From Macrostomum lignano (lineage: Eukaryota), in the NCBI GenBank assembly GCA_002269645.1, contig NIVC01001606.1, positions 1-64,000 on the forward strand: DNA of 64,000 nt, given 5' to 3'. The notes under the pieces were generated by a model. It was not told where the DNA came from and ran no database searches. It worked only from the letters and a program-made list of their open reading frames with translations. The position numbers and the translations under genes are program-made. Each line of letters opens with the position of its first letter. Within the stretch, counting starts at the first letter, position 1. Positions 15,551-40,459 of the stretch are shown piece after piece.

Positions 15551-15554
15551 AGCG

Positions 15555-16585: not shown

Positions 16586-16587
16586 CC

Positions 16588-18320: not shown

Positions 18321-18405
18321 GGACCCGTCAGATCCGGGATGCTTACACCAGTCTTCCCGTTTCCATGACGTCGGCATCATCGAGCTGCCGGTCTCCTGCC
18401 TGCAG

Positions 18406-18833
18406 GGCCGACGAGCTGCCCGACGGTCAGGACTTCATCGCCGTCACCGTCACCAGCCGCGGCCTCCTGCGGCTGGACTGCGACTTCACCGTCGGCTCCG
18501 CGCAGCTGCTGACGGCGCTGGAGGCGTCGCTGCAGTCGCCCAGAATCGACGACGGCTTGGGACGTCGGTTTCGACTGGTCGCTCGGCGTCGAAAGTCCGA
18601 CATTGAGCTGCAGATGCTCGTCAAGGAGAGCGCCGCGGCCTCTGCGACGCGGCGTCGGCTTCGTCGGCGGCCTGCCGGACGGCGGCGCCCTGGCGGCCTC
18701 GATGTCGGCGACTGCGGCCGGTCGACTCAGCGACTTCCGGGGCTGCCTGTGGAGTCTGCGGATGCAGAGCTCCGCGCCGGTGAACTTCATGGCCGAGAGT
18801 CTGCGGGGACTGGGCGTTGAGCAGTGCAGCTGA
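18406..18833 (+). pseudogene. Laminin-G domain terminal exon, frameshifted (copy A)
   Basis: DFIAVTV..GLLRLDCDF.VG...IDDG..RFRLVARR, then in the +1 frame FVGGLP...FRGCLWSL...GVEQC*; acceptor CTCCTGCCTGCAG|G at 18405/18406. Confidence 0.65.
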
Positions 18834-19214
18834 TGGAGAGCCGAGAGTCTGCGGGGACTGAGCGTTGAGCAGTGCAGCTGATGGAGAGCTGAGAGTCTGC
18901 GGGGGACTCAGAGCTCTCACTCCCAGCTGCAGAACTGGCCCAGCAGTTCAGGGACAGACTTTATAAAATTGAGTTTTGCTGCTCATTGTACTTTTATGCC
19001 AACCCATTTTGCTTGATTGTACTGTAATTAAAAACATAAATTTTCAATATTTTGCACCTGTTTCCTCATACGGTTCAGCTCTTCATCCCTCAAGCAGCCT
19101 TCAATTCTGTCAAAAATATCAGCGATGCCATCTGACCGGATGCTGAGCCCCCTGACCCGAATTCCTGGCGCAATTGTGAGCAATTTTGTTATAATCAGCC
19201 ACTGTGCGCATGTG

Positions 19215-19595
19215 GTCAATGGAGTAGCACTCTGAATGGAGTAGCACTCTGAATGGAGTAGCACTCTGAATGGAGTAGCACTCTGAATGGAGTAGCACTC
19301 TGAATAGAGTAGCACTCTGAATGGAGTAGCATTCTGAATGGAGTAGCACTCTGAATGGAGTAGCATTCTGAATGGAGTAGCACTCTGAATGGAGTAGCAC
19401 TCTGAATGGAGTAGCACTCTGAATGGAGTAGCATTCTGAATGGAGTAGCACTCTGAATGGAGTAGCATTCTGAATGGAGTAGCACTCTGAATGGAGTAGC
19501 ACTCTGAATGGAGTAGCACTCTGAATGGAGTAGGACTCTGAATGGAGTAGCACTCTGAATGGAGTAGCACTCTGAATGAAGTAGCACTCTGATAA
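19215..19595. repeat. 17-bp minisatellite (TGGAGTAGCACTCTGAA)n
   Basis: Direct periodicity; paralog at 33152-33530. Confidence 0.96.
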
Positions 19596-19803
19596 ATGGA
19601 GCATCACTCTTGTACACGTACTGTAAAAGTGCATGAATGAACTCAAGTCTTGCGTCATCAATTAGCCTAGGATGCAGCAGTCACTGGTGCGCAACTCAAA
19701 GTGTAAATAAAATGCTCATTTATCACAGACTACTGTTAGTAGGATTGGACGAAACCTCCTTCCGGCACAATGTAACAAACTGCTATTATTCGAGTTGTTA
19801 ATC

Positions 19804-19817
19804 GTTACCATGGCAAC
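19804..19817. promoter_or_regulatory. RFX X-box upstream of ANK-cGLR copy A
   Basis: GTTACCATGGCAAC, a canonical near-palindromic X-box. Confidence 0.6.
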
Positions 19818-20760
19818 CCATATCCTGGCTTTGCGATGTACACAGGCAGTAGAAAACTTCTCATAACCTGCTCCCGACCAAAAGGTATTTGAAAAAAATT
19901 TGTCACAAAGAGAGACGGGAGCCCCGGTGCGGGCCCTCCTAGAATCCGCTTAGGGCCATTTTATCAAAATATTGTGAGCCCTAGTAAATAAACTAATGGG
20001 AAACCTCGGTCATTTGATTGTGAGATAGCACAAATGCCACGATGTCCTCGTATGGCACCTCACTGGCGCCTGACTGCTTCCGTAGCGCATCACTTCCTCG
20101 CTGGCGCCTCACTACACCATGATTTTGGCTAGTGTTTTAAGTGATTTTTCACCTAGCGATTAAATTACATTTTGCATTTTGCATCAATTGCATTCTGCAA
20201 CGGTCTGAGCTATTCGTGGATTTAAACTGGAAACTCTGACTCAGGGACTACTCAAACACCGGGACGGGAAACTAGGAATTTTTTACGAGGCTGGTCTTTT
20301 ATCAGCAGTAGAAAATAACCATAGACAACAAAGTAACACAGCATCTCTCTAATGCAAATAATTGCCAGCCAGCCTCGTAAAAAATTTTAGTTTCCCGTCC
20401 CGGTGTTTGAGTAGTCCCTGCTCTGACTGAATTTATTCGTGCAGAAGCCGCGTCTCTGCCAGCTGCAGGCATTCTCTCATTTACCACAGCAGTTTCCAAT
20501 TTTTGCAGCTCGCTCCCACAGATATTACTGAGCAGCACTGGGCAGCAGTTCGCGAATGAAGTTGAGAACCGCGCGAAGCTGATTGGCTCTCAGCAGCAAA
20601 AGCCTTCAGCACTGGGGTTAAAATGGACAGCAGCTCGCTCTGAGTGCACTTGGAGAAATCCGAGTGAGCTCCGAAACAAGGACGACTTGAGTACTAATTA
20701 TTTCTTTCTTCTAAGCATCTTAAGTACTTTCTTCAGGCATTCCTTGCTTCGAAATCTGAC

Positions 20761-22370
20761 ATGGGATTTCTGCAGCGACTCTTCAGCGCGGTGGCCGCCT
20801 GCTGCTTGCGGGTTTTCGGCCGCAGGGCGAGCCGGGATGCCGCAGCCGAGCCCATAGATGAAGAGCTCTTTGAGGCGATTGAAGCGGACCGCCTGCAGGC
20901 GGTGGAGAACTTCGTTGCCAGTGGGAGGAGTGTCGACACGATTCTGACTTGGAGAGGAAGTGAGTGCACACCGCTGATGTGGGCTTGCTACCTGAGCAGA
21001 ATCGGCATCTTGGCGAGGCTGATTCGAGAGAGTGTTGATGTCAACAAACAGAACAGTGAGGGATTCTCGGCAGTGCATATTGGATGTCAACAAGGCCATC
21101 GTGAGGCTGTCGATTTACTAATTCAAGCACGAGCCGACGTCAATCTTCAACGAAACACTGGCTCGTCACCTCTCTACATTGCATCACAAAATGGCCACCA
21201 TGAGGTAGTCGATCGACTCCTCAAAGCACGAGCCGACGTCAATCTTCAAGAGAAGGTCAGTGGCTCGTCACCTCTCTACATTGCATCACAAAATGGCCAC
21301 CATGAGGTAGTCGATCGACTCCTCAAAGCACGAGCCGACGTCAATCTTCAAGAGAAGGTCAGTGGCTCGTCACCTCTCTACATTGCATCACAAAATGGCC
21401 ACCATGAGGTAGTCGATCGACTCCTCAAAGCACGAGCCGACGTCAATCTTCAACGAAACACTGGCTCGTCACCTCTCTACATTGCATCACAAAATGGCCA
21501 CCATGAGGTAGTCGATCGACTCCTCAAAGCACGAGCCGACGTCAATCTTCAAGAGAAGGTCAGTGGCTCGTCACCTCTCTACATTGCATCACAAAATGGC
21601 CACCATGAGGTAGTCGATCGACTCCTCAAAGCACGAGCCGACGTCAATCTTCAACGAAACACTGGCGAGTCACCTCTCTACATTGCATCACAAAATGGCC
21701 ACCATGAGGTAGTCGATCGACTCCTCAAAGCACGAGCCGACGTCAATCTTCAACGAAACACTGGCTCGTCACCTCTCTACATTGCATCACAGCAAGGCCA
21801 CCATGAGGTAGTCGATCGACTCCTCAAAGCACGAGCCGACGTCAATCTTCAACTCAACACTGGCGAGTCACCTCTCTACATTGCATCACAAAATGGCCAC
21901 CATGAGGTAGTCGATCGACTCCTCAAAGCACGAGCCGACGTCAATCTTCAACGAAACACTGGCTCGTCACCTCTCTACATTGCATCACAAAATGGCCACC
22001 ATGAGGTAGTCGATCGACTCCTCAAAGCACGAGCCGACGTCAATCTTCAACGAAACACTGGCTCGTCACCTCTCTACATTGCATCACAAAATGGCCACCA
22101 TGAGGTAGTCGATCGACTCCTCAAAGCACGAGCCGACGTCAATCTTCAAGGAAACACTGGCTCGTCACCTCTCTACATTGCGGCACAAAACGACCACCAT
22201 CACGTGGTTGAGTCACTTCTCAAGGCCTCCGCTTTGGCTGGATCTCGAGAGTCACTTCAGTCTGCTCTCAGCCGTGCCATCGAGTTCCGCAGTGAGCGAT
22301 CTGCCCAAATTCTGCACCGTGCGCTGACGGGCGATGAGCGACCGAATTCGGTCCGAGAGGCTGCAGACAG
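20761..22370 (+). CDS. ANK-cGLR copy A, coding exon 1: ankyrin array (2 divergent, 10 near-identical and 1 terminal repeat)
   Basis: 33/34-aa SPLYIASxxGHHEVVDRLLKARADVNLQ units; the ORF stop lies inside the donor CAG|GTGAGC (22370/22371), phase 2. Confidence 0.9.
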
Positions 22371-22957
22371 GTGAGCGAGCGCTTCTGAGCAACTTGGTTA
22401 CTCAACTTGGTGACTACTTTAATTCAAAATTGGTGTTCATGTATATCAATTAGGTTTCCATTCCAAGCAGCAGGTGTCTGTATCAAGGTACCTGGCAGAG
22501 TTTTGTAAAGAATCCATTTTGAATGGCGGGATTTGCAGATCACTCGGTTGCTAGATGATGATGAAACACAAATACACCTTACTTATGGGAATTTTATTTC
22601 ATTTGAATTGAGTGTCGAGTAGCTGAGCTGCTCACTGAAGCTCTGATCTTGCAGCTGCAGAGGCGGCAGCGGGAAAAACTGAAGTCTGAACTAAAGCTTA
22701 AACTCTGCAGATTTTGTCACTGATTGAGTGGCAGAGAGTCTGAGGGGATCAAACACAGTTGCGGTTCTCGTACTCAGTTTTCCCTCCTCCCATCTAGATT
22801 GTTCCTCATGAGCCTTTTGAGCAGTCAAGCTTGAGCAGATTTCCATGCCACTCTCTGGGGTACGAATTGAGTTTTCGATAAGTTCCTCATGAAACATGCA
22901 TCTGATCTCAGCCAATCATAGTGAATCACAGCAGCTCCCACTCCTCCCATCATCCAG

Positions 22958-23307
22958 ACTTGCTCCCAGCGACAATGACCTCAGCCAGCAGCTGCACTCA
23001 GCGCTGACCCGCTCGGGATTCGTGGACTCCAGAGCCGCCTTGCAGAGCGCCGCGGCTGATGTCCTGCAGGATGTTCTGAGGAGAAGACTGAATGATGATG
23101 AAATTTTCGTGGTGGGCAGCTTTTCAGAGGGCTGGGGCAACAGCCTGGTCACTCTGGATGGCAGAACTGGCATCGAGTCCGACATTGACGTGATTAGGCT
23201 ATTTGGAAGAAGTCTGATTCACCCGATCGATCTGTGCGAGTGCACTGGAGTGACGACTCAGACAAAAGTGGAGTACCGCAACGGACACGTCTTGAGTCCC
23301 GGATACG
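22958..23307 (+). CDS. ANK-cGLR copy A, exon 2: nucleotidyltransferase N-terminal core
   Basis: Acceptor CTCCCACTCCTCCCATCATCCAG|A (phase 2, in frame); [10 protein letters not shown]...ESDIDV (GS...DxD); donor TACG|GTGAGA, phase 1. Confidence 0.85.
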
Positions 23308-23324
23308 GTGAGAGACAGCCTGTC

Positions 23325-24330
<1,006 letters not shown>

Positions 24331-24482
24331 GTGAGTTATTCTGGCTAATTTAAATTTCGATAAAAAGATGGATAAAGATACTGTTTTGATAAACTGTTAT
24401 TTAATTGCTTGCAGTGAATGTTTTTTTCGTTAGAAAAAACTTTTTCTTCACTACTCGTCTCTTCATCACCCGCGCATTGCAG

Positions 24483-25918
24483 CATCCAGGCCAGCCCGTC
24501 AAGAAAGAGGCTCAATCCTGAGACCGGCTGTCGATAAAGTTGACGCCCGCCGCCTCTGCCGCTACCCGCCAATCACGCCGCTGCTTGAGAACCGAGTCTC
24601 CGACTCAAACATCCCCCAATCCGTGCTGCAGTCGCTCCAGCATCTCCTCACCTCTGCTTCATCGCCCTGTCACGTGGTGCACGCAGCGCCTCCCGGAAAA
24701 GGAGGCCAGCAGCTCCGAGTGAGCACCAGCTTCCTGGAGAGGCGACTGCTGCGGAGTCTCACCACTCTGCAGGGCCAGCTGTTCGTCACGCTCAAGTGGC
24801 TGCTGAAGAAGGCCGTCCGACACAACGGCTTCAAGTCGTATCACGCAAAGACCATCGCGTTCCGAATGCTCGAGCAGACACCGGCTGAGCAGTGGAACGA
24901 CGCTCGGAATCTCGTGAGTCTCACCAGACGCTCGCTGCAGATGCTTGAGAGCGACTGCAGATCAGGCGGACCTGACGCCAGGATCATGGACCACTTCTTC
25001 CTTGGCGATGCCGCTGTGTATCTGAGAGGCGTGGACACCACATCAGCTGAGAAGGCGACTCGAGCGTTGAATGAGGCAGCTGATGCAGTGAGAGAGGCGA
25101 TCGATAGGCTGCCTGAGCTGCTGCTGGAGTTCGAGCACAGCCTGCGACCCGTCACCGACTCGGGCCGATTCCACTTCCACCCGTTCCTCATTCTGCCAAT
25201 CATGGACTTCCCAGCTCCAGTGTCAGCAGCGAACGTATGCGAGTACCACGAGATCTACAGCATTGTGAGAGAGTCGCTTCTCGGAGTGTCAGACGGAGAC
25301 CGAAGCCCAGAGTCCCGACAGCGTCTCTCGGAGCTGATCGGCCAGCTGCCAGACTGCGCCTTCTCAACGCGAGAGTCTCTCAGAGCGCTGATCTGCCTGA
25401 AGTTCGGCGACCGAGAGGCTGCAGCGAAAGTCGTTAGCGACTGCAGGCAGTTCAGCGCGAGCAGAGGCATCGACTGGCCCGCTGAGAGGTCGGCGAGTGA
25501 GGCGACTGCGGACTTGGTGTGGCGGCACCTGAGGAGCCGAGACTCGGCGTGGAAGTTCTGCTTCGTGTTTGACAAGCGGCCGCAGCTGCCGATCGGAAAT
25601 CGGATTGTCGCAGAGTTCATTCCGCTACAGCTGAAAAACTACGGCACTTACTTCTTCGTGAACTTCGACGCTCTGCTTTGTGCGCTCCGCTTCGATCTGA
25701 TAGAAGCAGGAGACTCCATTGCTCAAGACTGGATCCGGGATGTGGTGCTCAGTGAGGATGCGGATGAGCAGGAGCTGATGGTGGCTGCAGTTTTCTGTCA
25801 AGATCTGGAGCTGCTGCAGCAGTTGCGTAGGAGAAGCTCCAGGATGCTCGGCTACGTGCCTCGGTGGCTGGAGAGCAAAGTGGAAGAGCGGCTGCAGGAG
25901 CTGCGGGCACCGAAATAA
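24483..25918 (+). CDS. ANK-cGLR copy A, exon 3: third catalytic Asp, Mab-21 C-lobe and unknown C-terminal domain
   Basis: Acceptor CATTGCAG|CA (phase 1, in frame); [35 protein letters not shown] match the cGAS/Mab-21 pattern. Spliced total 3396 nt = 1131 aa. Confidence 0.87.
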
Positions 25919-26209
25919 AAAAAGTGAGAATGTCCTGAGCCGAGTGCCAGATGCGACTGCGGTTGCACCGGTGGGTGACTGCCTTCATGGCTTCTTGGCA
26001 CCATTGGATTGCTTTGTAATCGAGCAACTTGATGGCTTATTAATGTTTGTTTTCTACCAGTAGCTGCGTGACTCAGTGATCTGCTCATGCAGCACGCCTA
26101 AACCCTCCGTTTTTTCTGCTGTGACGTCCTCGCTTCAAATGCTATTCATGTACATCCCTTGCTTCTGATGTCAAATCTGAAGCCATTCTTATGGGATACT
26201 TAGGTTTGC

Positions 26210-26895
26210 AAGCCAGACATTTTCCAGCCAGATATTTGCCAGCCAGATATTTGCCAGCCAGATTTTTGCCAGCCCGATATTTGCCAGCCAGATACTTGCC
26301 AGCCAGATATTTGCCAGCCAGACATTTTCCAGCCAGACATTTTCCAGCCAGACATTTTCCAGCCAGACAATTTCCAGCCAGAAATTTTCCAGCCAGATAT
26401 TTGCCAGCCAGATACTTGCCAGCCCGATATTTGCCAGCCAGATATTTGCCAGCCCGATATTTGCTAGCCAGACATTTTCCAGCCAGACATTTTCCAGCCA
26501 GACAATTTCCAGCCAGAAATTTTCCAGCCAGATATTTGCCAGCCAGATACTTGCCAGCCCGATATTTGCCAGCCAGATATTTGCCAGCCCGATATTTGCT
26601 AGCCAGACATTTTGCCAGCCAGACATTTTCCAGCCAGATATTTGCCGCCAGATACTTGCTAACCAGATATTTGCCAGCCAGATATTTGCCAGTTAGATAT
26701 TTGCCAGCCAGACATTTTCCAGCCAGATATTAGCCAGCCACATATTTGCCAGCCAGATTTTTGCCAGCCAGATATGTGCCTGCCAGATATTTGCCAGTAA
26801 GACATTTTCCAGCCAGATATTTGCCAGCCAGATATTTGGCAGCCAGATATTTGCCAGCCCGATATTTGCAAGTAAGACATTTTCCAGCCAGATTC
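26210..26895. repeat. 15-bp minisatellite (CCAGCCAGATATTTG)n
   Basis: Direct periodicity; paralog at 40460-41075. Confidence 0.96.
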
Positions 26896-26904
26896 TCGCG
26901 TGTT

Positions 26905-27560
26905 CTCGCGTGTGTGCATTGCTTTTGAGTTGTGAGGCTGCTTAAATAGTGTCTTTCGCTCTCTTTCATCTTTGCTGCTCCATGGTGCATACTTGGCAGG
27001 TGTTCGAGCACCTCTCGTCTCATCTCTCCCGGTATCAATAATCTCTTTCCAACCAGCATTAGTTCTTCTTCAACATTGAGCTTCTTACGCAAGCTCTAGT
27101 AGGGCTTCAGAGACAGTCGCTGCAACCTTGGGTTGTCGATCTGGTCTAAAGCGTACTTATTTGAGATCGGCCCCAGCGGTCCGTGATCGATTACTATTTC
27201 GAAGTGTTTCAATCTTTCGAGAAAAATACAAGATATTTTTCACTCTTCAAGCAACAGCCAGCAGATCAAGTTCGATCGTTGCGCAACGACGCTCGGCCTC
27301 CAAAACGAATCTTGAGCCGGCTTGGACGACTCGCCATGAGCAGTCGCTCTGCTTCTGCTTCAGGTTAGAGCGGAGATAATTGGGTCTGGAAGCATCCGTG
27401 TGCCATGCAGATACGAGAGGTAAATAAGAGAGGTTGATCATAAAAGGCCATCGTATGGTCGCTGCTCAGCTCCCTTGTCATCTATCGGAACGCTTCATCA
27501 TGCTGTTGGCTCCAGATGAAGTCATTCTTGGCCTTCAGTAGGTTCCGCAGTGGCTGTCAA
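26905..27560 (-). mobile_element. Degenerate Gypsy-type pol fragment (RNase H and start of integrase)
   Basis: HTDASR..QKQ..W.VVQAGSRF..E.R.ATIELDLLAVAW; RLLIPGEMRREVLEHL..MHHGAAKMK. Confidence 0.75.
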
Positions 27561-27889
27561 ATGGCTGGCTAGCAAATTTTTTGGCTGAAATTCAAATGAG
27601 TTGAATTTTGCTGTCGCTGATGATGCGGCATGGGTGCTGCATCTCAGACTGTTTGATTTGCCTTGCCATTCTTATCTCCCCCAACTCAGTTTTCCCTTCT
27701 GAAACTCAATGATTCTGTTGTGTTTGCACATTTGCATCATTTCATAATGCTGCTCTTTATTGTGTATTTGTCATCCTTCTGGTGAATTGTGCACAGGTTT
27801 TACTGCCTTTTAGCTCGATTTTGGTTCCGTTTGGTAATTGTCTGACACCAAAGTTTTTGCAGCCCAGGCCAGGCAGATTGAAGATATTG

Positions 27890-28865
27890 GGGATTTTTAG
27901 GCTTGGGGATTGTGAAGTTTAGGGATTGTGACATATGGGATTGTAAAGTTTAGGGATTGTGACATATGGGATTGTAAAGTTTGGGGATTGTGACACTTGG
28001 GATTGTGAAGTTTGGGGATTGTGACATTTGAGATTGTGAAGTTTGGGGATTGTGAAATTTGTGATTGTGAAGTTTGGGGATTGTGACATATGGGATTGTA
28101 AAGTTTAGGGATTGTGACATATGGGATTGTAAAGTTTGGGGATTGTGACACTTGGGATTGTGAAGTTTGGGGATTGTGACATTTGAGATTGTGAAGTTTG
28201 GGGATTGTGAAATTTGTGATTGTGAAGTTTGGGGATTGTGACATTTGTGATTGTGAAGTTTGGGGATTGTGACATTTTGGATTGTGAAATTTGGGGATTG
28301 TGAAATTTGGGATTGTGAGAATTGGGGATTGTTAAGTATGCAGATTGTGACATTTGGGATTGTAAAGTTTAGGGATTGTGACATATGGGATTGTAAAGTT
28401 TGGGGATTGTGACACTTGGGATTGTGAAGTTTGGGGATTGTGACATTTGAGATTGTGAAGTTTGGGGATTGTGAAATTTGTGATTGTGAAGTTTGGGGAT
28501 TGTGACATATGGGATTGTAAAGTTTAGGGATTGTGACATATGGGATTGTAAAGTTTGGGGATTGTGACACTTGGGATTGTGAAGTTTGGGGATTGTGACA
28601 TTTGAGATTGTGAAGTTTGGGGATTGTGAAATTTGTGATTGTGAAGTTTGGGGATTGTGACATTTGTGATTGTGAAGTTTGGGGATTGTGACATTTTGGA
28701 TTGTGAAATTTGGGGATTGTGAAATTTGGGATTGTGAGAATTGGGGATTGTTAAGTATGCAGATTGTGACATTTGGGATTGTAAAGTTTGGGGATTGTGA
28801 CATTTGGTATTGTGAAGTTTAGGGATGATGGAGTTCAGGGAGGTGAATTGAAGTTTGGGAATTAT
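27890..28865. repeat. GGGATTGTGA-based satellite (about 15-17-bp subunits) with a 419-bp higher-order repeat
   Basis: Identical translated segments recur at an offset of 419 (28105 vs 28524). Confidence 0.9.
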
Positions 28866-28879
28866 AAAAGCTTTGGAAT

Positions 28880-29890
28880 GTGATATCTGAGGATCGTGAA
28901 CTGAAGAATTTGATTTTTTGGGATTGTGAACTAAAGAATGTGATATTTGAGGATCGTGAACTGAAGAATGGGATATTTAGGGATCGTGAACTGAAGAATG
29001 GGATATTTGGGGATCGTGAACTGAAGAATGGGATATTTGGGGATCGTGAACTGAATAGGTGATATATGGGGATCGTGAACTGAAGAAATGTGATATTTGG
29101 GATCCTGAACTGAAGAATGTGATTTTTTGGGATTGTGAACTAAAAAATGTGATATTTGAGGATCGTGAACTGAAGAATGGGATATTTGGGGATCGTGAAC
29201 TGAAGAATGGGATATTTGGGGATCGTGAACTGAAGAATGGGATATTTGGGGATCGTGAACTGAATAGGTGATATATGGGGATCGTGAACTGAAGAAATGT
29301 GATATTTGGGATCGTGAACTAAAGAATGGGATATTTGGGGATCGTGAACTGAAGAATGGGATATTTGGGGATCGTGAATTTAAGAATGAGATATTTGGGG
29401 ATCGTGAACTGAAGAATGTGATATATGGGGATCGTGAACTGAAGAATGAGATATTTGGGATCGTGAACTGAAGAATGTGATATTTGGGGATCGTGAACTG
29501 AAGAATGGGATACTTGGGGATCGTGAACTGAAGAATGTGATATTTGGGGATCCTGAACTGAAAAATGGGATATTTAGGGATCGTGAACTGAAGAATGTGA
29601 TATTTGGGGATCCTGAACTGAAGAATGGGATATTTGGGGATCTTGAACTGAAGAATGTGATATTTGGGGATCCTGAACTGAAGAATGGGATATTTGGGGA
29701 TCGTGAACTGAAGAAAGGGATATTTGAGAATCCTGAACTGAAGAATGTGATATTTGGGGATCGTGAACTGAAGAATGGGATATTTGGGGATCGTGAACTG
29801 AAGAAAGGGATATTTGAGAATCCTGAACTGAAGAATGTGATATTTGGGGATCGTGAACTGAAGAATGGGATATTTGGGGATCGTGAACTC
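28880..29890. repeat. 30-bp minisatellite (GGGGATCGTGAACTGAAGAATGGGATATTT)n
   Basis: Direct periodicity. Confidence 0.95.
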
Positions 29891-30164
29891 AGCAGTGCCA
29901 AGCGAAGCGGCAAAAGCTGTTCCCCAAACTGGCTGCAGCCCGGAGTCGGTGAGGGCAGTTCACGCTGATTTCAAAATTAGCAAAATTCAGTCGCGCTGCC
30001 TCAGCCGTTTCTTAGAAACGCTCAGCCAGCCGCAGCCGCCAGTGCGGTGAGCAACAAGACGGCAGTGTGGCACAGGCAGTTGGCGCATTGCAAACTATTT
30101 GAGTCTTTTTTGACTTGAGAATGGCTGTCTGTCACGCATTTACTGTGCATGATTCATTGGCTTT

Positions 30165-31165
30165 AAATACATGTGCAAATAAGAGCCGTGCAAATGCATG
30201 TGCAAATAAGAGCCGTGCAAATACTTGTGCAAATAAGAGCCATGCAAATGCATGTGCAAATAAGAGCCGTGTAAATACGTGTGCAAATAAGAGCCGTGCA
30301 AATGCATGTGCAAATAAGAGCCGTGCAAATGCATGTGCAAATTAGAGCCGTGCAAATACGTGTGCAAATAAGAGCCATGCAAATGCATGTGCAAATAAGA
30401 GCCGTGCAAATGCATGTGCAAATAAGAGCCATGCAAATGCATGTGCAAATAAGAGCCGTGCAAATGCATGTGCAAATTAGAGCCGTGCAAATACGTGTGC
30501 AAATAAGAGCCGTGCAAATTCATGTGCAAATTAGAGCCGTGCAAATACGTGTGCAAATAAGAGCCGTGCAAATGCATGTGCAAATAAGAGCCGTGCAAAT
30601 GCATGTGCAAATAAGAGCCGTGCAAATGCATGTGCAAATAAGAGCCGTGCAAATGCATGTGCAAATAAGAGCCGTGCAAATACATGTGCAAATAAGAGCC
30701 GTGCAAATACGTGTGCAAATAAGAGCCGTGCAAATGCATGTGCAAATAAGAGCCGTGCAAATACATGTGCAAATAAGAGCCATGCAAATACTTGGGCAAA
30801 TAAGAGCCGTGCAAATACGTGTGCAAATAAGAGCCGTGCAAATGCATGTGCAAATAAGAGCCGTGCAAATGCATGTGCAAATAAGAGCCGTGCAAATGCA
30901 TGTGCAAATAAGAGCCGTGCAAATGCATGTGCAAATAAGAGCCATGCAAATGCATGTGCAAATAAGAGCCGTGCAAATACTTGTGCAAATAAGAGCCGTG
31001 CAAATGCATGTGCAAATAAGAGCCGTGCAAATACCTGTGCAAATAAGAGCCATGCAAATACTTGTGCAAATAAGAGCCGTGCAAATACATGTGCAAATAA
31101 GAGCCGTGCAAATACATGTGCAAATAAGAGCCGTGCAAATACATGTGCAAATAAGAGCCGTGCAA
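30165..31165. repeat. 27-bp minisatellite (GTGCAAATAAGAGCCGTGCAAATRCAT)n
   Basis: Direct periodicity. Confidence 0.96.
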
Positions 31166-32341
31166 GATGAACTCAGAAGCAGCTCTTTAAGCACAATTAA
31201 TTGGGTGATTAATTGCTCAATTTTATTCACTCATGGCTCTGAGGGGTCTTTCCTGCAAGCCTCAGACAGAAATGAGCCATTTATTTGTTATAATGAATAT
31301 TTATTCCTATAGTGGGAAACTCACGGGACTTCAGCATATAAAATTGCAGGCTATAAGCCTCACATGACGCTACACAATGCCAGTTTAGGGGGTTATAAAA
31401 CTCATTGCCACAAGCCCTCATGACAGATCTGTAAAATAAACTACAATGCCTGTCAGAGTCCTGCTTGAGCACAACTGGGAAACTCACAGAGCCAGCAGCT
31501 CAGCAGAGACCCGAGCGCTCGCAGCCCCCAACTCCCAGATCGAACTCACAATTGAGAACTGCTCAATGCTACAATAGCAGCCCCTCCCCAACTTATCGAT
31601 CAGCTGTGAAACCGCCAATGCAACTCATACAGTAAGAAGCAGTCACTGAGCTGCCCAGAGTCCATTCAGCTTCAATTGCCACCAAGTCAGCATTTTGCAA
31701 GTCTTGCATTCACTGGGAGAGCTCAGGAAATGCAGGAGGAGAACCCTGCCTCGGTGGTCTGTGGATAAAAATAATTGATTTTTCAGCAGCCGATCGATAT
31801 TGGGTTAGGGGGAGCGATCGATATATTTTTATATATTTAGCGATCGATATTGGGTTAGGGGGAGCTGATGGATCAGAAGCATGCGAGCTGATTGGCTGCA
31901 GGGTGAGGGGAGGAAATGTACATCTGAGGGGCAGGGAGTTGAGCGGTGTGCGGCCAGCAGTCACTGCATTCTAGATCAGAGCTGTCCGTTGAGAACAGCT
32001 CAACCAACCTGCCACCTGAGCATTGTGAGCGGCATCTCGTTTCCCTAGCAACTGGGAGAATTCTCAAAGCTCAGCAGCTCAGTGTTAGTTTTCCATAGCA
32101 ACCGCTCAGATACAAATGGAGACAGCAGCAGTTTTGCATAGCAACCGCTAAGATACACATGGAGACAGCAGCAGTTTTGCATAGCAACAGCTCAGATAGA
32201 CATAGAGACAGCAGCAGTTTTGCATAGCAACCGCTCAGATACACACGGAGACAGCAGGACCCGTCAGATCCGGGATGCTTACACCAGTCTTCCCGTTTCC
32301 ATGACGTCGGCATCATCGAGCTGCCGGTCTCCTGCCTGCAG

Positions 32342-32769
32342 GGCCGACGAGCTGCCCGACGGTCAGGACTTCATCGCCGTCACCGTCACCAGCCGCGGCC
32401 TCCTGCGGCTGGACTGCGACTTCACCGTTGGCTCCGCGCAGCTGCTGACGGCGCTGGAGGCGTCGCTGCAGTCGCCCAGAATCGACGACGGCTTGGGACG
32501 TCGGTTTCGACTGGTCGCTCGGCGTCGAAAGTCCGACATTGAGCTGCAGATGCTCGTCAAGGAGAGCGCCGCGGCCTCTGCGACGCGGCGTCGGCTTCGT
32601 CGGCGGCCTGCCGGACGGCGGCGCCCTGGCGGCCTCGATGTCGGCGACTGCGGCCGGTCGACTCAGCGACTTCCGGGGCTGCCTGTGGAGTCTGCGGATG
32701 CAGAGCTCCGCGCCGGTGAACTTCATGGCCGAGAGTCTGCGGGGACTGGGCGTTGAGCAGTGCAGCTGA
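32342..32769 (+). pseudogene. Laminin-G domain terminal exon, frameshifted (copy B)
   Basis: Same sequence and same frameshift as 18406-18833. Confidence 0.65.
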
Positions 32770-33151
32770 TGGAGAGCCGAGAGTCTGCGGGGACTGAGCG
32801 TTGAGCAGTGCAGCTGATGGAGAGCTGAGAGTCTGCGGGGGACTCAGAGCTCTCACTCCCAGCTGCAGAACTGGCCCAGCAGTTCAGGGACAGACTTTAT
32901 AAAATTGAGTTTTGCTGCTCATTGTACTTTTATGCCAACCCATTTTGCTTGATTGTGCTGTAATTAAAAACATAAATTTTCAATATTTTGCACCTGTTTC
33001 CTCATACGGTTCAGCTCTTCATCCCTCAAGCAGCCTTCAATTCTGTCAAAAATATCAGCGATGCCATCTGACCGGATGCTGAGCCCCCTGACCCGAATTC
33101 CTGGCGCAATTGTGAGCAATTTTGTTATAATCAGCCACTGTGCGCATGTGG

Positions 33152-33530
33152 TCAATGGAGTAGCACTCTGAATGGAGTAGCACTCTGAATGGAGTAGCAC
33201 TCTGAATGGAGTAGCACTCTGAATGGAGTAGCACTCTGAATGGAGTAGCACTCTGAATGGAGTAGCATTCTGAATGGAGTAGCACTCTGAATGGAGTAGC
33301 ACTCTGAATGGAGTAGCACTCTGAATGGAGTAGCACTCTGAATGGAGTAGCACTCTGAATAGAGTAGCATTCTGAATGGAGTAGCACTCTGAATGGAGTA
33401 GCATTCTGAATGGAGTAGCACTCTGAATGGAGTAGCACTCTGAATGGAGTAGCACTCTGAATGGGGTAGCACTCTGAATGGAGTAGCACTCTGAATGGAG
33501 TAGCACTCTGAATGAAGTAGCACTCTGATA
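33152..33530. repeat. 17-bp minisatellite (TGGAGTAGCACTCTGAA)n
   Basis: Direct periodicity. Confidence 0.96.
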
Positions 33531-33738
33531 AATGGAGCATCACTCTTGTACACGTACTGTAAAAGTGCATGAATGAACTCAAGTCTTGCGTCATCAATTA
33601 GCCTAGGATGCAGCAGTCACTGGTGCGCAACTCAAAGTGTAAATAAAATGCTCATTTATCACAGACTACTGTTAGTAGTATTGGACGAAACTCCTTCCGG
33701 CACACTGTAACAAACTGCTATTATTCGAGTTGTTAATC

Positions 33739-33752
33739 GTTACCATGGCAAC
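33739..33752. promoter_or_regulatory. RFX X-box upstream of ANK-cGLR copy B
   Basis: GTTACCATGGCAAC. Confidence 0.6.
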
Positions 33753-34694
33753 CCATATCCTGGCTTTGCGATGTACACAGGCAGTAGAAAACTTCTCATA
33801 ACCTGCTCCCGACCAAAAGGTATTTGAAAAAATTTGTCACAAAGAGAGACGGGAGCCCCGGTGCGGGCCCTCCTAGAATCCGCTTAGGGCCATTTTGACA
33901 AAATATTGTGAGCCCTAGTAAATAAACTAATGGGAAACCTCGGTCATTTGATTGTGAGATAGCACAAATGCCACGATGTCCTCGTATGGCACCTCACTGG
34001 CGCCTGACTGCTTCCGTAGCGCATCACTTCCTCGCTGGCGCCTCACTACACCATGATTTTGGCTAGTGTTTTAAAGTGATTTTTCACCTAGCGATTAAAT
34101 TACATTTTGCATTTTGCATAAATTGCATTCTGCAACGGTCTGAGCTATTCGTGGATTTAAACTGGAAACTCTGACTCAGGGACTACTCAAACACCGGGAC
34201 GGGAAACTAGGAATTTTTTACGAGGCTGGTCTTTTATCAGCAGTAGAAAATAACCATAGACAACAAAGTAATACAGCATCTCTCTAATGCAAATAATTGC
34301 CAGCCAGCCTCGTAAAAAATTTTAGTTTCCCGTCCCGGTGTTTGAGTAGTCCCTGCTCTGACTGAATTTATTCGTGCAGAAGCCGCGTCTCTGCCAGCTG
34401 CAGGCATTCTCTCATTTACCACAGCAGTTTCCAATTTTTGCAGCTCGCTCCCACAGATATTACTGAGCAGCACTGGGCAGCAGTTCGCGAATGAAGTTGA
34501 GAACCGCGCGAAGCTGATTGGCTCTCAGCAGCAAAAGCCTTCAGCACTGGGGTTAAATTGACAGCATTTCGCTCTGAGTGCACTTGGAGAAATCCGAGTG
34601 AGCTCCGAAACAAGGACGACTTGAGTACTAATTATTTCTTTCTTCTAAGCATCTTAAGTACTTTCTTCAGGTATTCCTTGCTTCGAAATCTGAC

Positions 34695-36799
34695 ATGGGA
34701 TTTCTGCAGCGACTCTTCAGCGCGGTGGCCGCCTGCTGCTTGCGGGTTTTCGGCCGCAGGGCGAGCCGGGTTGCCGCAGCCGAGCCCATAGATGAAGAGC
34801 TCTTTGAGGCGATTGAAGCTGACCGCCTGCAGGCGGTGGAGAACTTCGTTGCCAGTGGGAGGAGTGTCGACACGATTCTCACTTGGAGAGGAAGTGAGTG
34901 GACACCGCTGATGTGGGCTTGCTACCTGAGCAGAATCGGCATCTTGGCGAGGCTGATTCGAGAGAGTGTTGATGTCAACAAACAGGACAGTGAGGGATTC
35001 TCGGCAGTGCATATTGGATGTCAACAAGGCCATCGTGAGGCTGTCGATTTACTAATTCAAGCACAAGCTGACGTCAATCTTCAAGAGAAGGTCAGTGGCT
35101 CGTCACCTCTCTACATTGCATCAGCCTATGGCCACCATGAGGTAGTCGATCGACTCCTCAAAGCACGAGCCGACGTCAATCTTCAACGAAACACTGGCGA
35201 GTCACCTCTCTACATTGCATCAGCCTATGGCCACCATGAGGTAGTCGATCGACTCCTCAAAGCACGAGCCGACGTCAATCTTCAAGAAGTCGATGGCTGC
35301 TCACCTCTCTACATTGCATCACAAAATGGCCACCATGAGGTAGTCGATCGACTCCTCAAAGCACGAGCCGATGTCAATCTTCAAGAAGTCGATGGCTGCT
35401 CACCTCTCTACATTGCATCAGCCTATGGCCACCATGAGGTAGTCGATCGACTCCTCAAAGCACGAGCCGACGTCAATCTTCAACTCAACACTGGCGAGTC
35501 ACCTCTCTACATTGCATCAGCCTATGGCCACCATGAGGTAGTCGATCGACTCCTCAAAGCACGAGCCGACGTCAATCTTCAACGAAACACTGGCTCGTCA
35601 CCTCTCTACATTGCATCAGCCTATGGCCACCATGAGGTAGTCGATCGACTCCTCAAAGCACGAGCCGACGTCAATCTTCAACGAAACACTGGCGAGTCAC
35701 CTCTCTACATTGCATCAGCCTATGGCCACCATGAGGTAGTCGATCGACTCCTCAAAGCACGAGCCGACGTCAATCTTCAAGAAGTCGATGGCTGCTCACC
35801 TCTCTACATTGCATCACAAAATGGCCACCATGAGGTAGTCGATCGACTCCTCAAAGCACGAGCCGATGTCAATCTTCAAGAAGTCGATGGCTGCTCACCT
35901 CTCTACATTGCATCACAAAATGGCCACCATGAGGTAGTCGATCGACTCCTCAAAGCACGAGCCGATGTCAATCTTCAAGAAGTCGATGGCTGCTCACCTC
36001 TCTACATTGCATCAGCCTATGGCCACCATGAGGTAGTCGATCGACTCCTCAAAGCACGAGCCGACGTCAATCTTCAACGAAACACTGGCGAGTCACCTCT
36101 CTACATTGCATCAGCCTATGGCCACCATGAGGTAGTCGATCGACTCCTCAAAGCACGAGCCGACGTCAATCTTCAACTCAACACTGGCTCGTCACCTCTC
36201 TACATTGCATCAGCGGCAGGCCACCATGAGGTAGTCGATCGACTCCTCAAAGCACGAGCCGACGTCAATCTTCAAGTAGTCGATGGCTGCTCACCTCTCT
36301 ACATTGCATCACAAAATGGCCACCATGAGGTAGTCGATCGACTCCTCAAAGCACGAGCCGACGTCAATCTTCAAGAGAAGGTCAGTGGCTCGTCACCTCT
36401 CTACATTGCATCAGCCTATGGCCACCATGAGGTAGTCGATCGACTCCTCAAAGCACGAGCCGACGTCAATCTTCAAGAGAAGGTCAGTGGCTCGTCACCT
36501 CTCTACATTGCATCACAAAATGGCCACCATGAGGTAGTCGATCGACTCCTCAAAGCACGAGCCGACGTCAATCTTCAACGAAACACTGGCGAGTCACCTC
36601 TCTACATTGCGGCACAAAACGACCACCATCACGTGGTTGAGTCACTTCTTAAAGCCTCCGCTTTGGCTGGATCTCGAGAGTCACTTCAGTCTGCTCTCAG
36701 CCGTGCCATCGAGTTCCGCAGTGAGCGATCTGCCCAAATTCTGCACCGTGCGCTGACGGGCGATGAGCGACCGAATTCGGTCCGAGAGGCTGCAGACAG
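34695..36799 (+). CDS. ANK-cGLR copy B, coding exon 1: ankyrin array (2 divergent, 15 near-identical and 1 terminal repeat)
   Basis: 165 aa longer than copy A, equal to 5 x 33; donor CAG|GTGAGC at 36799/36800, phase 2. Confidence 0.9.
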
Positions 36800-37386
36800 G
36801 TGAGCGAGCGCTTCTGAGCAACTTGGTTACTCAACTTGGTGACTACTTTAATTCAAAATTGGTGTTCATGTATATCAATTAGGTTTCCATTCCAAGCAGC
36901 AGGTGTCTGTATCAAGGTACCTGGCAGAGTTTTGTAAAGCATCCATTTTGAATGGCGGGATTTGCAGATCACTCGGTTGCTAGATGATGATGAAACACAA
37001 ATACACCTTACTTATGGGAATTTTATTTCATTTGAATTGAGTGTCGAGTAGCTGAGCTGCTCACTGAAGCTCTGATCTTGCAGCTGCAGAGGCGGCAGCG
37101 GGAAAAACTGAAGTCTGAACTAAAGCTTAAACTCTGCAGATTTTGTCACTGATTGAGTGGCAGAGAGTCTGAGGGGATCAAACACAGTTGCGGTTCTCGT
37201 ACTCAGTTTTCCCTCCTCCCATCTAGATTGTTCCTCATGAGCCTTTTGAGCAGTCAAGCTTGAGCAGATTTCCATGCCACTCTCTGGGGTACGAATTGAG
37301 TTTTCGATAAGTTCCTCATGAAACATGCATCTGATCTCAGCCAATCATAGTGAATCACAGCAGCTCCCACTCCTCCCATCATCCAG

Positions 37387-37736
37387 ACTTGCTCCCAGCG
37401 ACAATGACCTCAGCCAGCAGCTGCACTCAGCGCTGACCCGCTCGGGATTCGTGGACTCCAGAGCCGCCTTGCAGAGCGCCGCGGCTGATGTCCTGCAGGA
37501 TGTTCTGAGGAGAAGACTGAATGATGATGAAATTTTCGTGGTGGGCAGCTTTTCAGAGGGCTGGGGCAACAGCCTGGTCACTCTGGACGGCAGAACTGGC
37601 ATCGAGTCCGACATTGACGTGATTAGGCTATTTGGAAGAAGTCTGATTCACCCGATCGATCTGTGCGAGTGCACTGGAGTGACGACTCAGACAAAAGTGG
37701 AGTACCGCAACGGACACGTCTTGAGTCCCGGATACG
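37387..37736 (+). CDS. ANK-cGLR copy B, exon 2: NTase core
   Basis: Same splice sites and protein sequence as copy A exon 2 (GSFSEG...SDID). Confidence 0.85.
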
Positions 37737-37754
37737 GTGAGAGACAGCCTGTCA

Positions 37755-38605
<851 letters not shown>

Positions 38606-38751
38606 GTTATTCTGGCTAATTTAAATTTCGATAAAAAGATTGATAAAGATACTGTATTGATAAACCTATTTCATTGCTTGCAATGAATGTTTTTTTCGTT
38701 AGAAAAAACTTTTTCTTCACTTCTCGTCTCTTCATCACCCGCGCATTGCAG

Positions 38752-40205: not shown

Positions 40206-40459
40206 GCCGAGTGCCAGATGCGACTCCGGTTGCACCGGTCGGTGACTGCCTTCATGGCTTCTTGGCACCATTGGATTGCTTTGTAATCGAGCAACTTGAT
40301 GGCTTATTAATGTTTGTTTTCTACCAGTAGCTGCGTGACTCAGTGATCTGCTCATGCAGCACGCCTGTTGTGACGTCCTCGCTTCAAATGCTATTCATGT
40401 TCATCCCCCTTGCTTCTGATGTCAAATCTGAAGCCATTCTTATGGGATACTTAGGTTTG

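Follow-up and report, generated by a model that had tools for sequence, protein, structure and literature searches.

A tandem pair of ankyrin and cGAS-like genes in Macrostomum lignano with near-identical repeat units that differ at a few codons

Layout of the gene pair

The window, a 64,000-nucleotide stretch of Macrostomum lignano DNA (assembly GCA_002269645.1, contig NIVC01001606.1, positions 1 to 64,000), contains two tandem paralogs, gene A and gene B, which have three exons each and are apparently intact (Table 1). Both lie within one tandem segmental duplication, whose copies are offset by ~13.9 kb, and the two segments also have upstream minisatellites in common (TRF). TRF reported 99-nt arrays at 21125-22200 (10.8 copies, 95% matches) and at 35059-36610 (15.6 copies), each inside a long ORF that Pfam scores as ankyrin. 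In gene A, exon 1 encodes 124 N-terminal amino acids with two diverged ankyrin repeats, followed by the ankyrin array and a short linker, and ends at a phase 2 donor (AG/GTGAGC). Exon 2 begins after an acceptor (AG/A) that completes the phase 2 codon and ends at a second donor (TACG/GTGAGA). The spliced products, 1131 aa for gene A and 1302 aa for gene B, are intact across the three exons.

Two partial copies are also found in the window. One is a truncated pseudogene of exon 1 with the N-terminal region, one complete ankyrin unit, and one broken unit. The other is an inverted fragment of exon 3, which adjoins a retroelement-like ORF without a Pfam match.

Table 1. Positions of the two genes, their repeat arrays, and related copies in the window
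Feature	Positions	Strand	Content or evidence
Truncated exon 1 pseudogene fragment	6739..7298	-	91% identity to 34791-35208 (self-BLAST)
Inverted exon 3 fragment	15551..16588	-	identity 97.3% to gene B, 94.4% to gene A
Tandem duplication segment A	18151..27577	+	self-BLAST to 32087-42003, 91-97% identity; common TRF arrays
Gene A exon 1	20761..22370	+	ORF 20761-22374; Pfam Ank_2 E 2.4e-166
Array A, 10 near-identical 99/102-nt ankyrin units	21133..22131	+	mean aa identity 0.925; 5 distinct aa units
Array A diverged C-terminal cap unit (GNT-S...AAQNDHHHVVESLLKAS)	22132..22230	+	unit extraction
Gene A exon 2	22958..23307	+	nucleotidyltransferase core start; GS loop and DID catalytic motif (VVGS-X20-DIDV)
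(CTGT)n microsatellite, ~1 kb, within gene A intron 2	23320..24332	+	TRF
Gene A exon 3, stop codon included	24483..25918	+	remaining nucleotidyltransferase core, Mab21-type helical lobe, C-terminal helical extension
Tandem duplication segment B	32087..42003	+	self-BLAST; common TRF arrays
Gene B exon 1, paralog of gene A exon 1	34695..36799	+	ORF 34695-36803; Pfam Ank_2 E 1.1e-236
Array B, 15 near-identical ankyrin units	35067..36560	+	mean aa identity 0.879; 9 distinct units
Array B diverged cap unit (RNT-E...AAQNDHHHVVESLLKAS)	36561..36659	+	unit extraction
Gene B exon 2	37387..37736	+	1/350 nt different from gene A exon 2
Gene B exon 3, stop codon included	38752..40205	+	pS 0.089, pN 0.051 vs gene A

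Exons 2 and 3 encode a cGAS/Mab21-like nucleotidyltransferase, for which AlphaFold2 gave a pLDDT of 91.7 and a pTM of 0.92 (27-sequence alignment). The best 50 Foldseek matches are cGAS, Sp-cGLR1 (8gjy), and MAB21L1 (5eom), with E values of 1e-7 to 1e-5 and target-normalised TM scores of 0.46-0.58. At the sequence level, cGAS is matched only marginally (phmmer E 0.07), and the weak match of gene A to Pfam Mab-21_C (E 0.0095) is below the cut-off. The catalytic motif, VVGS-X20-DIDV-X54-VDK, includes the GS and D-x-D...D residues, which are conserved in the family alignment (G53, 27/27; S54, 26/27; D75, 26/27; D77, 24/27; D134, 23/27); the third Asp sits in RPAVD of gene A exon 3. Relative to the strict cGLR motif h[QT]GS, both genes have V in place of Q/T, and the 20 residues that separate GS from DxD are the most that the motif permits. 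This half may be an active enzyme that yields a nucleotide second messenger. We found no evidence of a STING partner in this analysis. The C-terminal helical extension of gene A (~200 aa) is family specific. The earlier note on this DNA, which dealt with the repeats, had mentioned neither the three-exon structure with the array as exon 1 nor the cGAS/Mab21-like half.

Judged from sequence matches, the pair is part of an ANK-cGLR expansion in Macrostomum, whose proteins Li et al. (2023, PMC9980059) had catalogued before. Overall, 118 cluster representatives match at E<1e-3, and among the 17 clusters looked up, those with an organism name are all M. lignano. Some family members contain a caspase domain. 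That paper lists ANK-cGLR as a known architecture and includes M. lignano family members in its catalogue and its 140-enzyme screen, among them PAA45980.1, which belongs to a cluster matched by our query. Near-identical repeats occur only in gene A, gene B, and P0004, a database protein of M. lignano; the other family members compared have ordinary, diverged ankyrin repeats. In its matched C-terminal stretch, P0004 shows 98% identity to gene A, and it has the same 10+1 unit layout, with three units that differ, at hypervariable positions only; it comes from an older assembly, and these three units could represent consensus errors. Neither the segmental duplication nor the restriction of near-identical repeats to this pair within a large family was part of the earlier note.

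Variation among the repeat units

Unit-by-unit extraction reproduced exactly the unit lists reported previously for both arrays. With each unit named by its beta-turn, the residue at position 5, and the helix-1 dipeptide, array A reads RNT-S-QN, EKVS-S-QN x2, RNT-S-QN, EKVS-S-QN, RNT-E-QN, RNT-S-QQ, LNT-E-QN, RNT-S-QN x2, and then the GNT-S cap. The 15 internal units of array B combine EKVS-S, RNT-E/S, EVD-C, LNT-E/S, and VVD-C with AY, QN, or AA ahead of its cap. Of the loop types noted earlier, GNT is found only in the array A cap. The pooled internal units (n = 25) have a mean pairwise aa identity of 0.881, with 13 distinct aa units and 15 distinct nucleotide units. Array B also contains a higher-order duplication with an offset of 5 units: its self-match at offset 498 is 93.8%, the highest among all offsets. 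A synonymous GAT marker is found in units B4, B9, and B10.

Alignment of all units, a check that the earlier note had proposed, places the variation in seven codons, where 18 of 21 nucleotide sites vary, versus 2 of 81 in the framework (25 units; Fisher p = 5.2e-15). Among the 34 codon columns, the amino acid is invariant in 27 and the nucleotides are invariant in 25. The two variable framework sites are both synonymous third positions (GCC/GCT in one unit and GAC/GAT in three), bearing out the claim that the repeats are near-identical even at synonymous sites. The framework has a pS of 0.018 and a pN of 0, whereas the hypervariable codons have a pN/pS of 1.26 and a pS of 0.41. The unit variants take the form of multi-nucleotide codon blocks (CAAAAT, GCCTAT, CAGCAA, and GCGGCA; TCG, GAG, and TGC), which seem to be old or acquired from elsewhere and not fresh mutations. 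Positions 9, 10, 17, 18, 21, 22, 25, and 27 have an entropy of 2.0-3.4 bits in a reference of 168 repeats from 20 diverged paralogs but are invariant in A and B. The uniformity of the framework thus reflects recent homogenisation and not structural constraint. Selection may favour diversity at the hypervariable codons.

This variation is in register with that of designed ankyrin repeat proteins (DARPins). phmmer alignments to DARPin modules (E down to 6e-138) are gap-free apart from the one-residue EKVS insertion, and the variable codons align to positions 1, 2, 3, 5, 13, and 14, which are those beta-turn and helix-1 positions at which selected DARPin binders differ from one another. The chance of obtaining exactly this set is 1/3003 for 6 random picks from the 14 most variable paralog positions (position 13, at 1.68 bits, and 13 others that exceed 2 bits). 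The positions that Binz and colleagues are said to have randomised in work from 2003 include 2, 3, 5, 13, and 14, so the earlier equation of the two sets stands for five of the six natural variable positions. It fails for position 1, which is kept as Asp in DARPins and varies here, and for position 33, which is randomised there and is an invariant Q here. Both systems repeat an identical consensus framework and confine diversity to the beta-turn and helix 1; however, DARPins have 2-3 internal units versus 10-15, and the flatworm arrays have a 34-residue loop variant among their units, with no more than 2-5 states at each position. The beta-turns and first helices form the canonical binding face seen in ankyrin and DARPin complexes, and by this alignment, the variable residues are predicted to lie on the ligand-binding face. 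Single-sequence AlphaFold2 modeling of the array was of low confidence (pLDDT 48), which leaves this placement to the alignment.

The arrays also retain a record of exchange between units. The loop types RNT-S, RNT-E, LNT-E, EKVS-S, and EVD-C are each paired with both QN (CAAAAT) and AY (GCCTAT), as the earlier note had said of several loop types. Because QN and AY differ at four nucleotides, recurrent mutation is implausible and exchange of loop and helix modules is required, with one breakpoint or conversion-tract end within the 21-nt spacer TCACCTCTCTACATTGCATCA. This stretch, where recombination had been proposed, is constant in 25/25 internal units. The unit count differs as well (10 in array A and 15 in array B).

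Origin and possible role of the arrays

We consider it probable (roughly 70%) that these genes are an ANK-cGLR pair in which a coding-minisatellite array serves as the recognition module of an immune-type sensor. The 99-nt units would act as the minisatellite, with unequal crossover and gene conversion within an array, and possibly between arrays, holding the framework identical down to synonymous sites while altering unit number and duplicating multi-unit blocks. Six positions (beta-turn positions 1-3 with the optional one-residue insertion, position 5, and helix-1 positions 13-14) would be kept different between units as codon blocks, and exchanges ending within the spacer would re-assort loop blocks with helix blocks. 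The array may then bind a ligand, most likely a protein, with specificity set by the arrangement of units, and binding would regulate the attached cGAS-like enzyme and hence production of a nucleotide second messenger in innate immunity.

It is unlikely that the arrays instead represent a neutral, young amplification, in which a recent unequal-crossover expansion from a few founders left residual divergence or relaxed loops, with neither selection for diversity nor a role in specificity. A pN/pS not clearly above 1 and a high pS do fit old variants carried along, and EKV[ST]G-S, xVDG-C, and RNTG-E/Q loops are present also in diverged paralogs, among them P0002, P0003, and P0009. Furthermore, the genome is extremely minisatellite rich (TRF), which makes tandem expansion mechanistically cheap. 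However, founders at paralog-level divergence (~50% identity) should differ at the eight positions of high paralog entropy, and none do. A single founder with neutral mutation should show changes scattered over 99 nt, as does the complete unit of the pseudogene, which serves as a neutral control and has 6 substitutions in the framework and 0 in hypervariable codons. Both genes have also kept long intact ORFs.

Slightly less likely is a structural or regulatory array, one that scaffolds, spaces, or autoinhibits the enzyme, for instance to oligomerise or localise it, and in which the variable positions are simply the only free ones in a homogenised array. Ankyrin domains are often scaffolds, no ligand is known to date, and paralogs differ in array length without obvious cost. 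Yet other surface positions that are equally free in the paralogs are invariant in A and B, and the variable set coincides with the canonical binding face in the DARPin alignment. The caspase fusions in the family also suggest a sensor-effector logic.

Mis-assembly or consensus polishing is very improbable as the source of the arrays or their unit order. Short reads can mis-reconstruct arrays of high internal conservation (PMC11761791), and P0004 has chimeric-looking loops (ENT and GNT-E) that are possible consensus errors. However, the two independent arrays (1.0 and 1.5 kb) contain 0 frameshifts or stops, all differences are whole-codon blocks (a clean 3-nt insertion among them), and the arrays have unique flanks and splice into intact genes; the 10+1 layout also recurs in P0004, an independent database protein. 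Just as improbable is programmed diversification, in which the hypervariable codon blocks would be rewritten by a dedicated templated or somatic mechanism (e.g., gene conversion directed from donor repeats). Variants in blocks of 2-6 adjacent nucleotides, synonymous changes included, are more like patch conversion than stepwise point mutation. However, the identical pattern is explained by ordinary gene conversion, meiotic or mitotic, among repeats and paralogs, and the window has no donor cassette library (the sole extra copy, at 6739-7298, has just RNT-S-QN and RNT-E) and no visible associated enzyme gene.

Comparison with known systems

The fungal precedent invoked in the earlier note is accurate: NLRs with highly internally conserved (HIC) ANK, TPR, or WD40 repeats are known from Podospora HNWD/het-e/het-d (Dyrka et al. 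2014, PMC4986451; Ament-Velasquez et al. 2025, PMC11761791). Among metazoan ANK, TPR, and WD proteins, HIC repeats made up only 0.8% (Dyrka et al. 2014, PMC4986451). Like the flatworm arrays, the fungal repeats are >85% identical over >100 aa (PMC4986451, PMC11761791), with a few hypervariable codons on the interaction surface (in the flatworm, by alignment) and with changes in repeat number and order that arise from unequal crossover or from recombination between paralogs. The two would also have their proposed role in common, namely to diversify an intracellular receptor rapidly. In contrast, the flatworm genes lack NACHT or NB-ARC domains (Pfam), and their putative signalling domain is a cGAS-like nucleotidyltransferase located C-terminal to the repeats, in an animal host. 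Positive selection and repeat-number polymorphism have been demonstrated in Podospora but are at most putative in the flatworm pair.

With animal cGLRs (PMC9980059), the pair shares a cGAS/Mab21 fold together with the G[S/G] loop and an acidic triad. That paper describes immune cGLRs as lacking in most platyhelminths. It gives the ANK fusion as a domain architecture only, and near-identical repeats with hypervariable contact codons are not mentioned in the text consulted. The pair further differs from animal cGLRs in having VVGS and not h[QT]GS, a 20-residue loop from GS to DxD, and an extra C-terminal helical extension of ~200 aa.

PRDM9 binds DNA in meiosis through C2H2 zinc fingers, the 84-nt units of its array, which are near-identical in nucleotides except at a few ligand-contact codons. 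Unequal crossover and gene conversion act on the PRDM9 array, and unit number and order turn over rapidly. It is likewise an animal coding minisatellite with rapidly turning-over units (e.g., PMC8925151). However, fold, ligand class, and biology are unrelated to those of the flatworm arrays, making PRDM9 a mechanistic analogue only. The best reading of array evolution is concerted evolution with diversity retained at contact positions, convergent with that of fungal NLRs and PRDM9. The gene pair resembles a type of innate immune sensor that evolves fast and has been described so far mainly in fungi.

The array-bearing genes and their surroundings

In the reading best supported by this analysis, genes A and B, tandem three-exon paralogs in M. 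lignano, are both of the ANK-cGLR type, each with an ankyrin array that forms a coding minisatellite. The 33-residue helix-turn-helix/beta-turn repeat matches Ank, Ank_2, and related Pfam models (Ank_2 E values of 2.4e-166 for A and 1.1e-236 for B; Ank E values of 1e-100 and 7e-139). A canonical GT donor closes exon 1 in phase 2, the frame is restored by an AG acceptor at 22957/22958, and gene B, spliced via the same junctions, encodes 1302 aa.

Features located in the window
Feature	Position	Strand	Remarks
99-nt-period arrays (array A; array B)	21125-22200; 35059-36610	+	TRF
Tandem segmental duplication	18151-27577 vs 32087-42003		91-97% identity, offset ~13.9 kb (self-comparison)
ORFs holding the arrays	20761-22374 (A); 34695-36803 (B)		overwhelmingly ankyrin by Pfam
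Gene A exon 2	22958-23307	+	ends in phase 1
Gene A exon 3	24483-25918	+	completes 1131-aa protein
(CTGT)n microsatellite, intron 2 of each gene	23320-24332; 37749-38604		~0.9-1 kb
Dead truncated copy	6739-7298	-	one complete unit
Inverted exon-3 fragment	15551-16588		97.3% to B, 94.4% to A
Otopetrin-like gene	13682-15550	+	622-aa single ORF; Pfam Otopetrin
Otopetrin-like gene	176-1678	-	split ORFs 611-1678 and 176-598; Pfam Otopetrin
Pyruvate kinase exons	51790-52400; 54063-54530	-	Pfam PK E 1e-64, PK_C E 3e-18
Intact 572-aa ORF	60126-61844	+	N-terminal BED zinc finger E 6e-7
Non-LTR retroelement-like fragment	3614-4914	-	weak endonuclease/exonuclease/phosphatase match
Non-LTR retroelement-like fragment	16446-17186	+	reverse-transcriptase-like by eye; no Pfam match

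The 594-aa C-terminal half has a single, weak Pfam match, to Mab-21_C (E 0.0095; 16.5 bits against a cut-off of 24.1), which one relative, P0086, attains with 24.7 bits. The phmmer match to cGAS chains is also weak (E 0.07, residues 268-338 only). An AlphaFold2 model built on a 27-sequence alignment is confident (pLDDT 91.7, pTM 0.92), and its best PDB match in Foldseek is cGAS (E 1.3e-7, probability 1.00, target-normalised TM up to 0.58), with further matches to coral Sp-cGLR1 (8gjy, E 3.9e-6) and MAB21L1 (5eom). The predicted fold is homologous in structure to cGAS and the CD-NTases, and the full C-terminal half is modelled as a cGAS-like part plus a helical extension. This extension of ~200 aa (residues ~370-594; exon 3, about 25250-25915) is confidently modelled and is conserved across the family, with W473, F475, N510, and F511 near-invariant.

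The relaxed cGLR signature of Li et al. 2023 (PMC9980059) consists of a G[S/G] loop and an [E/D]h[E/D]...X50-90...[E/D] triad. Both genes carry it, as VVGS-X20-DIDV-X54-VDK in A and with VDL in B, and its residues are conserved in the family (G53 in 27/27 members, S54 in 26/27, D75 in 26/27, D77 in 24/27, and D134 in 23/27). The strict h[QT]GS motif is absent, V preceding GS in both genes; among the 27 members, 18 have V at this site and 3 have T. Genes A and B are thus cGLRs by the relaxed and structural criteria of Li et al. 2023 but not by the strict h[QT]GS motif. An assignment to the NLR/STAND proteins, which have a central NACHT or NB-ARC, was rejected because this NOD domain is absent: Pfam finds ankyrin families and the weak Mab-21_C match in the products of all three exons, and nothing else.

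The minisatellite density of this eukaryotic window is extraordinarily high (68 TRF rows). Other minisatellites, with 43-, 48-, 17-, and 15-nt units, were copied together with the ANK-cGLR genes, and 24-25-nt minisatellites fill the introns of the pyruvate kinase gene, whose exon ORFs extend into them. The two otopetrin-like genes are inverted relative to each other and share ~76% nucleotide identity (Otopetrin E values of 3e-9 and 6e-8). No domain besides the BED zinc finger was detected in the 572-aa ORF, which may be a hAT-type or domesticated transposase. Two fragments look like non-LTR retroelement remains; the one on the forward strand adjoins the inverted exon-3 fragment, which is nearer to B than to A.

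Variation within the ankyrin units

Splitting both array ORFs at each ADVNLQ gave 10 internal units and a diverged cap in array A and 15 internal units and a cap in array B. This unit-wise extraction reproduced exactly the succession of loop, position-5, and helix variants given in the earlier note. Across all 25 internal units, 25 of the 34 codon columns are identical in nucleotides and 2 more carry a single synonymous change each (GCC/GCT and GAC/GAT); amino-acid variation is confined to seven codons. These comprise three codons of the loop, to which a fourth may be added (RNT, LNT, EKVS, EVD, or VVD), the codon following Gly (S, E, or C), and a helix-1 codon pair (QN, AY, QQ, or AA). The near-invariant scaffold with few variable codons that had been described is borne out by the distribution of variable nucleotide sites, with 18/21 in the hypervariable codons versus 2/81 elsewhere (Fisher p = 5e-15). 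Amino-acid identity between pairs of units averages 0.925 in A (10 units) and 0.879 in B (15 units), self-identity at offset 33 is 0.95 over 132 aa, and 13 distinct amino-acid units occur among the 25. Both arrays fall within the identity range of HIC repeats as defined by Dyrka et al. 2014 (at least 85% identical over at least 100 aa; PMC4986451), and the few hypervariable codons that are also part of that definition fall at positions 1-3, 5, 13, and 14, the predicted interaction surface.

A four-unit query aligned with chains of designed ankyrin repeat proteins (DARPins) with E values down to 6e-138, the sole gap being the one-residue EKVS insertion. Numbered as in DARPins, the sites that vary in the natural units are 1, 2, 3, 5, 13, and 14; the last five of these are also sites at which selected DARPin binders differ from one another in the same alignments. 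Binz et al., in 2003, reportedly randomised their DARPin library at 2, 3, 5, 13, 14, and 33. The proposal that the variable positions are those randomised in DARPins holds by alignment for 2, 3, 5, 13, and 14 and fails for two others: position 33, a randomised site in DARPins, is always Q in the natural arrays, whereas position 1, fixed as D in DARPins, varies in them. By homology, the variable residues, which align with the beta-turn and helix-1 paratope positions of DARPins, are predicted to lie on the concave face. The natural units would amount to an existing consensus ankyrin scaffold together with a set of paratope residues that are tolerated in nature.

Comparison with 168 ankyrin repeats from 20 diverged members of the same family indicates which positions tolerate change. 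These paralogs vary strongly at positions 1, 2, 3, 5, and 14 and more modestly at 13, and they vary too at positions 9, 10, 17, 18, 21, 22, 25, and 27 (entropy 2.0-3.4 bits). A random draw of six from the 14 most variable paralog positions (position 13 at 1.68 bits and 13 others above 2 bits) would yield precisely 1, 2, 3, 5, 13, and 14 with a probability of 1/3003. In the arrays, variation survives on one predicted face of the repeat only. The dead truncated copy is a natural neutral control within the window, with 6 framework substitutions and none in the hypervariable codons of its complete unit. The hypervariable codons of the arrays have a pN/pS of 1.26 and a pS of 0.41 (Nei-Gojobori), values that come from saturated block substitutions. 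The argument for selection rests on the spatial pattern rather than on dN/dS, and neutral amplification, in which the units would have multiplied free of selection, is ranked below the reading as a receptor array.

The eight tolerant positions that vary outside the predicted contact face in the paralogs are fully invariant in genes A and B, whose framework has a pS of 0.018 and a pN of 0. Because tolerant framework positions and synonymous sites alike are invariant, the uniformity of the units reflects recent concerted evolution; it is homogenisation and not structural constraint. A purely structural array is ranked below the receptor reading. The variants differ by 2-3 nt per codon and as adjacent-codon blocks, synonymous changes included (CAAAAT, GCCTAT, CAGCAA, and GCGGCA; TCG, GAG, and TGC), and the loop types EKV[ST]G-S, xVDG-C, and RNTG-E/Q are found in diverged paralogs as well. 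The blocks therefore resemble long-standing variants that were kept, or brought in by patch conversion, amid framework homogenisation, and do not look like new point mutations.

Recombination and relatives in Macrostomum

Every one of the combinations RNT-S, RNT-E, LNT-E, EKVS-S, and EVD-C is paired with both QN and AY. Recurrent mutation is an implausible source of both pairings because QN and AY are four nucleotides apart. A breakpoint or conversion-tract end within the 21-nt spacer is required to part the loop from the helix block, in agreement with the exchange that the earlier note placed there. In array B, units B2-B4 are similar to B7-B10, the best self-match of all offsets is at 5 units (93.8%), and a synonymous GAT marker is common to B4, B9, and B10; this higher-order structure is what unequal crossover of multi-unit blocks leaves behind. 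The divergence between A and B is a mosaic, amounting to 0.3% in exon 2 (1/350 nt), 1.6-2.1% in the exon-1 flanks, and a pS of 0.089 in exon 3, where divergence from the gene B counterpart (38752-40205) peaks at both ends. This mosaic suggests that sequence outside the array has also been converted between the paralogs. Arrays A and B show 0 fixed framework differences where ~1.5 would be expected from the flank divergence; with P(0) about 0.22 this is not significant, and conversion between the arrays is therefore not demonstrated.

A HMMER search of 1.84 billion cluster representatives found 118 relatives, 68 of them at E<1e-30, most being 900-1400 aa long and matched at the C-terminal end. 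All organism-labelled clusters among the 17 looked up are from M. lignano, and several of the 17 are named Mab-21-like or NTP_transf_2 by the source databases. A homologous-protein search with a 299-aa query gave 12 matches, all fragmentary M. lignano gene models; the N-terminus plus two units as a query returned generic ankyrin proteins only and no close relatives, and an exact-sequence look-up of the exon-1 ORFs found no identical entry. In Li et al. 2023 (PMC9980059), ANK-cGLR is among the architectures listed, and the screen includes M. lignano proteins, among them PAA45980.1, which was accepted as a cGLR. PAA45980.1 is a member of a cluster matched by the gene A C-terminal query. Two M. 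lignano relatives of the cGAS-like domain, P0063 (PAA59752.1) and P0086 (PAA93319.1), are also fused to further ankyrin repeats and carry a C-terminal caspase domain (Peptidase_C14; E values of 3e-25 and 3e-27), which is in keeping with an immune or cell-death role. In another relative, P0001, the cGAS-like domain occurs twice in tandem.

Of the 23 family proteins in which four or more repeats can be recognised, only those of gene A and gene B and the M. lignano database protein P0004 exceed a mean repeat identity of 0.8 (median 0.52), and an offset scan agrees in limiting near-identical repeats to these three. P0055 was rejected as a further high-identity array, its tail being a translated 17-aa minisatellite and hence a gene-model artefact, as were P0054 and P0062, with an internal identity of only about 70%. 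The latter two have a different 33-residue ankyrin-like N-terminal array (KRDQCCIEAAESAA..GQWEVVKFLV) and represent an intermediate degree of homogenisation in another family branch.

Over the C-terminal stretch that was matched, P0004 shares 98% identity with gene A; it has the same 10+1 units, three of which differ, at hypervariable positions only (EKVS to ENT, RNT-E to GNT-E, and QQ to QN). It mixes A-like and B-like residues, two exon-3 residues being B-like. Its differences hint at allelic or homeolog variation, or could be errors of an older assembly. Unit number differs between the paralogs (10 vs 15), and P0004, a possible homeolog or assembly-error carrier, equals A. Assembly artefact as an explanation of the arrays themselves is ranked lower than a coding minisatellite.

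Proposed mechanism and known systems

For an ANK-cGLR pair with a coding minisatellite, unequal crossover and gene conversion would homogenise the framework and alter unit number and order, with diversity kept at the predicted ligand-contact codons and re-assorted by exchange in the short spacer. By analogy, the array may act as the sensor that sets the specificity of an innate-immune-type receptor with signalling via the cGAS-like enzyme. It is possible, though on balance doubtful, that the arrays constitute a germline-encoded, individually polymorphic cGLR repertoire, in which unit shuffling and turnover would give new protein-ligand specificities with a second-messenger readout. The ligands would be pathogen effectors or those of allorecognition, and the readout would come from the cGAS-like second-messenger synthase. 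If true, such a repertoire would give animals an equivalent of fungal HIC-NLRs, and cGLRs their first fast-evolving sensor module akin to an antibody mimetic. Rearrangement of the array in somatic cells, a more extreme version of the repertoire, has no support, and programmed diversification, in which a dedicated process would vary the units, is ranked below the coding minisatellite.

Known cGLRs sense nucleic acids via the enzyme's own surface, and some invertebrate cGLRs carry appended ankyrin or TPR modules. The gene pair, whose ankyrin module bears the mark of a fast-diversifying binding surface, offers a concrete, testable case for protein-ligand-sensing cGLRs with such an appended module, and RNAi and transgenesis, both available in the laboratory model M. 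lignano, put its predictions within reach of tests.

Fungal HIC repeats with hypervariable surface codons, invertebrate ANK-cGLR fusions, and PRDM9-type coding minisatellites are already known separately; the literature searched contained no description of an animal cGLR that combines them. Metazoan ANK, TPR, and WD proteins seldom have HIC repeats (0.8%; Dyrka et al., PMC4986451). The regime proposed for arrays A and B matches the one described in fungal NLRs whose ANK, TPR, or WD40 repeats have high internal conservation, and the parallel drawn to them earlier fits the high-identity repeats described in PMC4986451 and PMC11761791. The PRDM9 zinc-finger array has a mechanistic likeness to arrays A and B, being a coding minisatellite with variable contact residues. 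With genes A and B, the conjunction of concerted evolution and hypervariable contact codons known from fungal NLRs and PRDM9 would be extended to a receptor of immune type in an animal.
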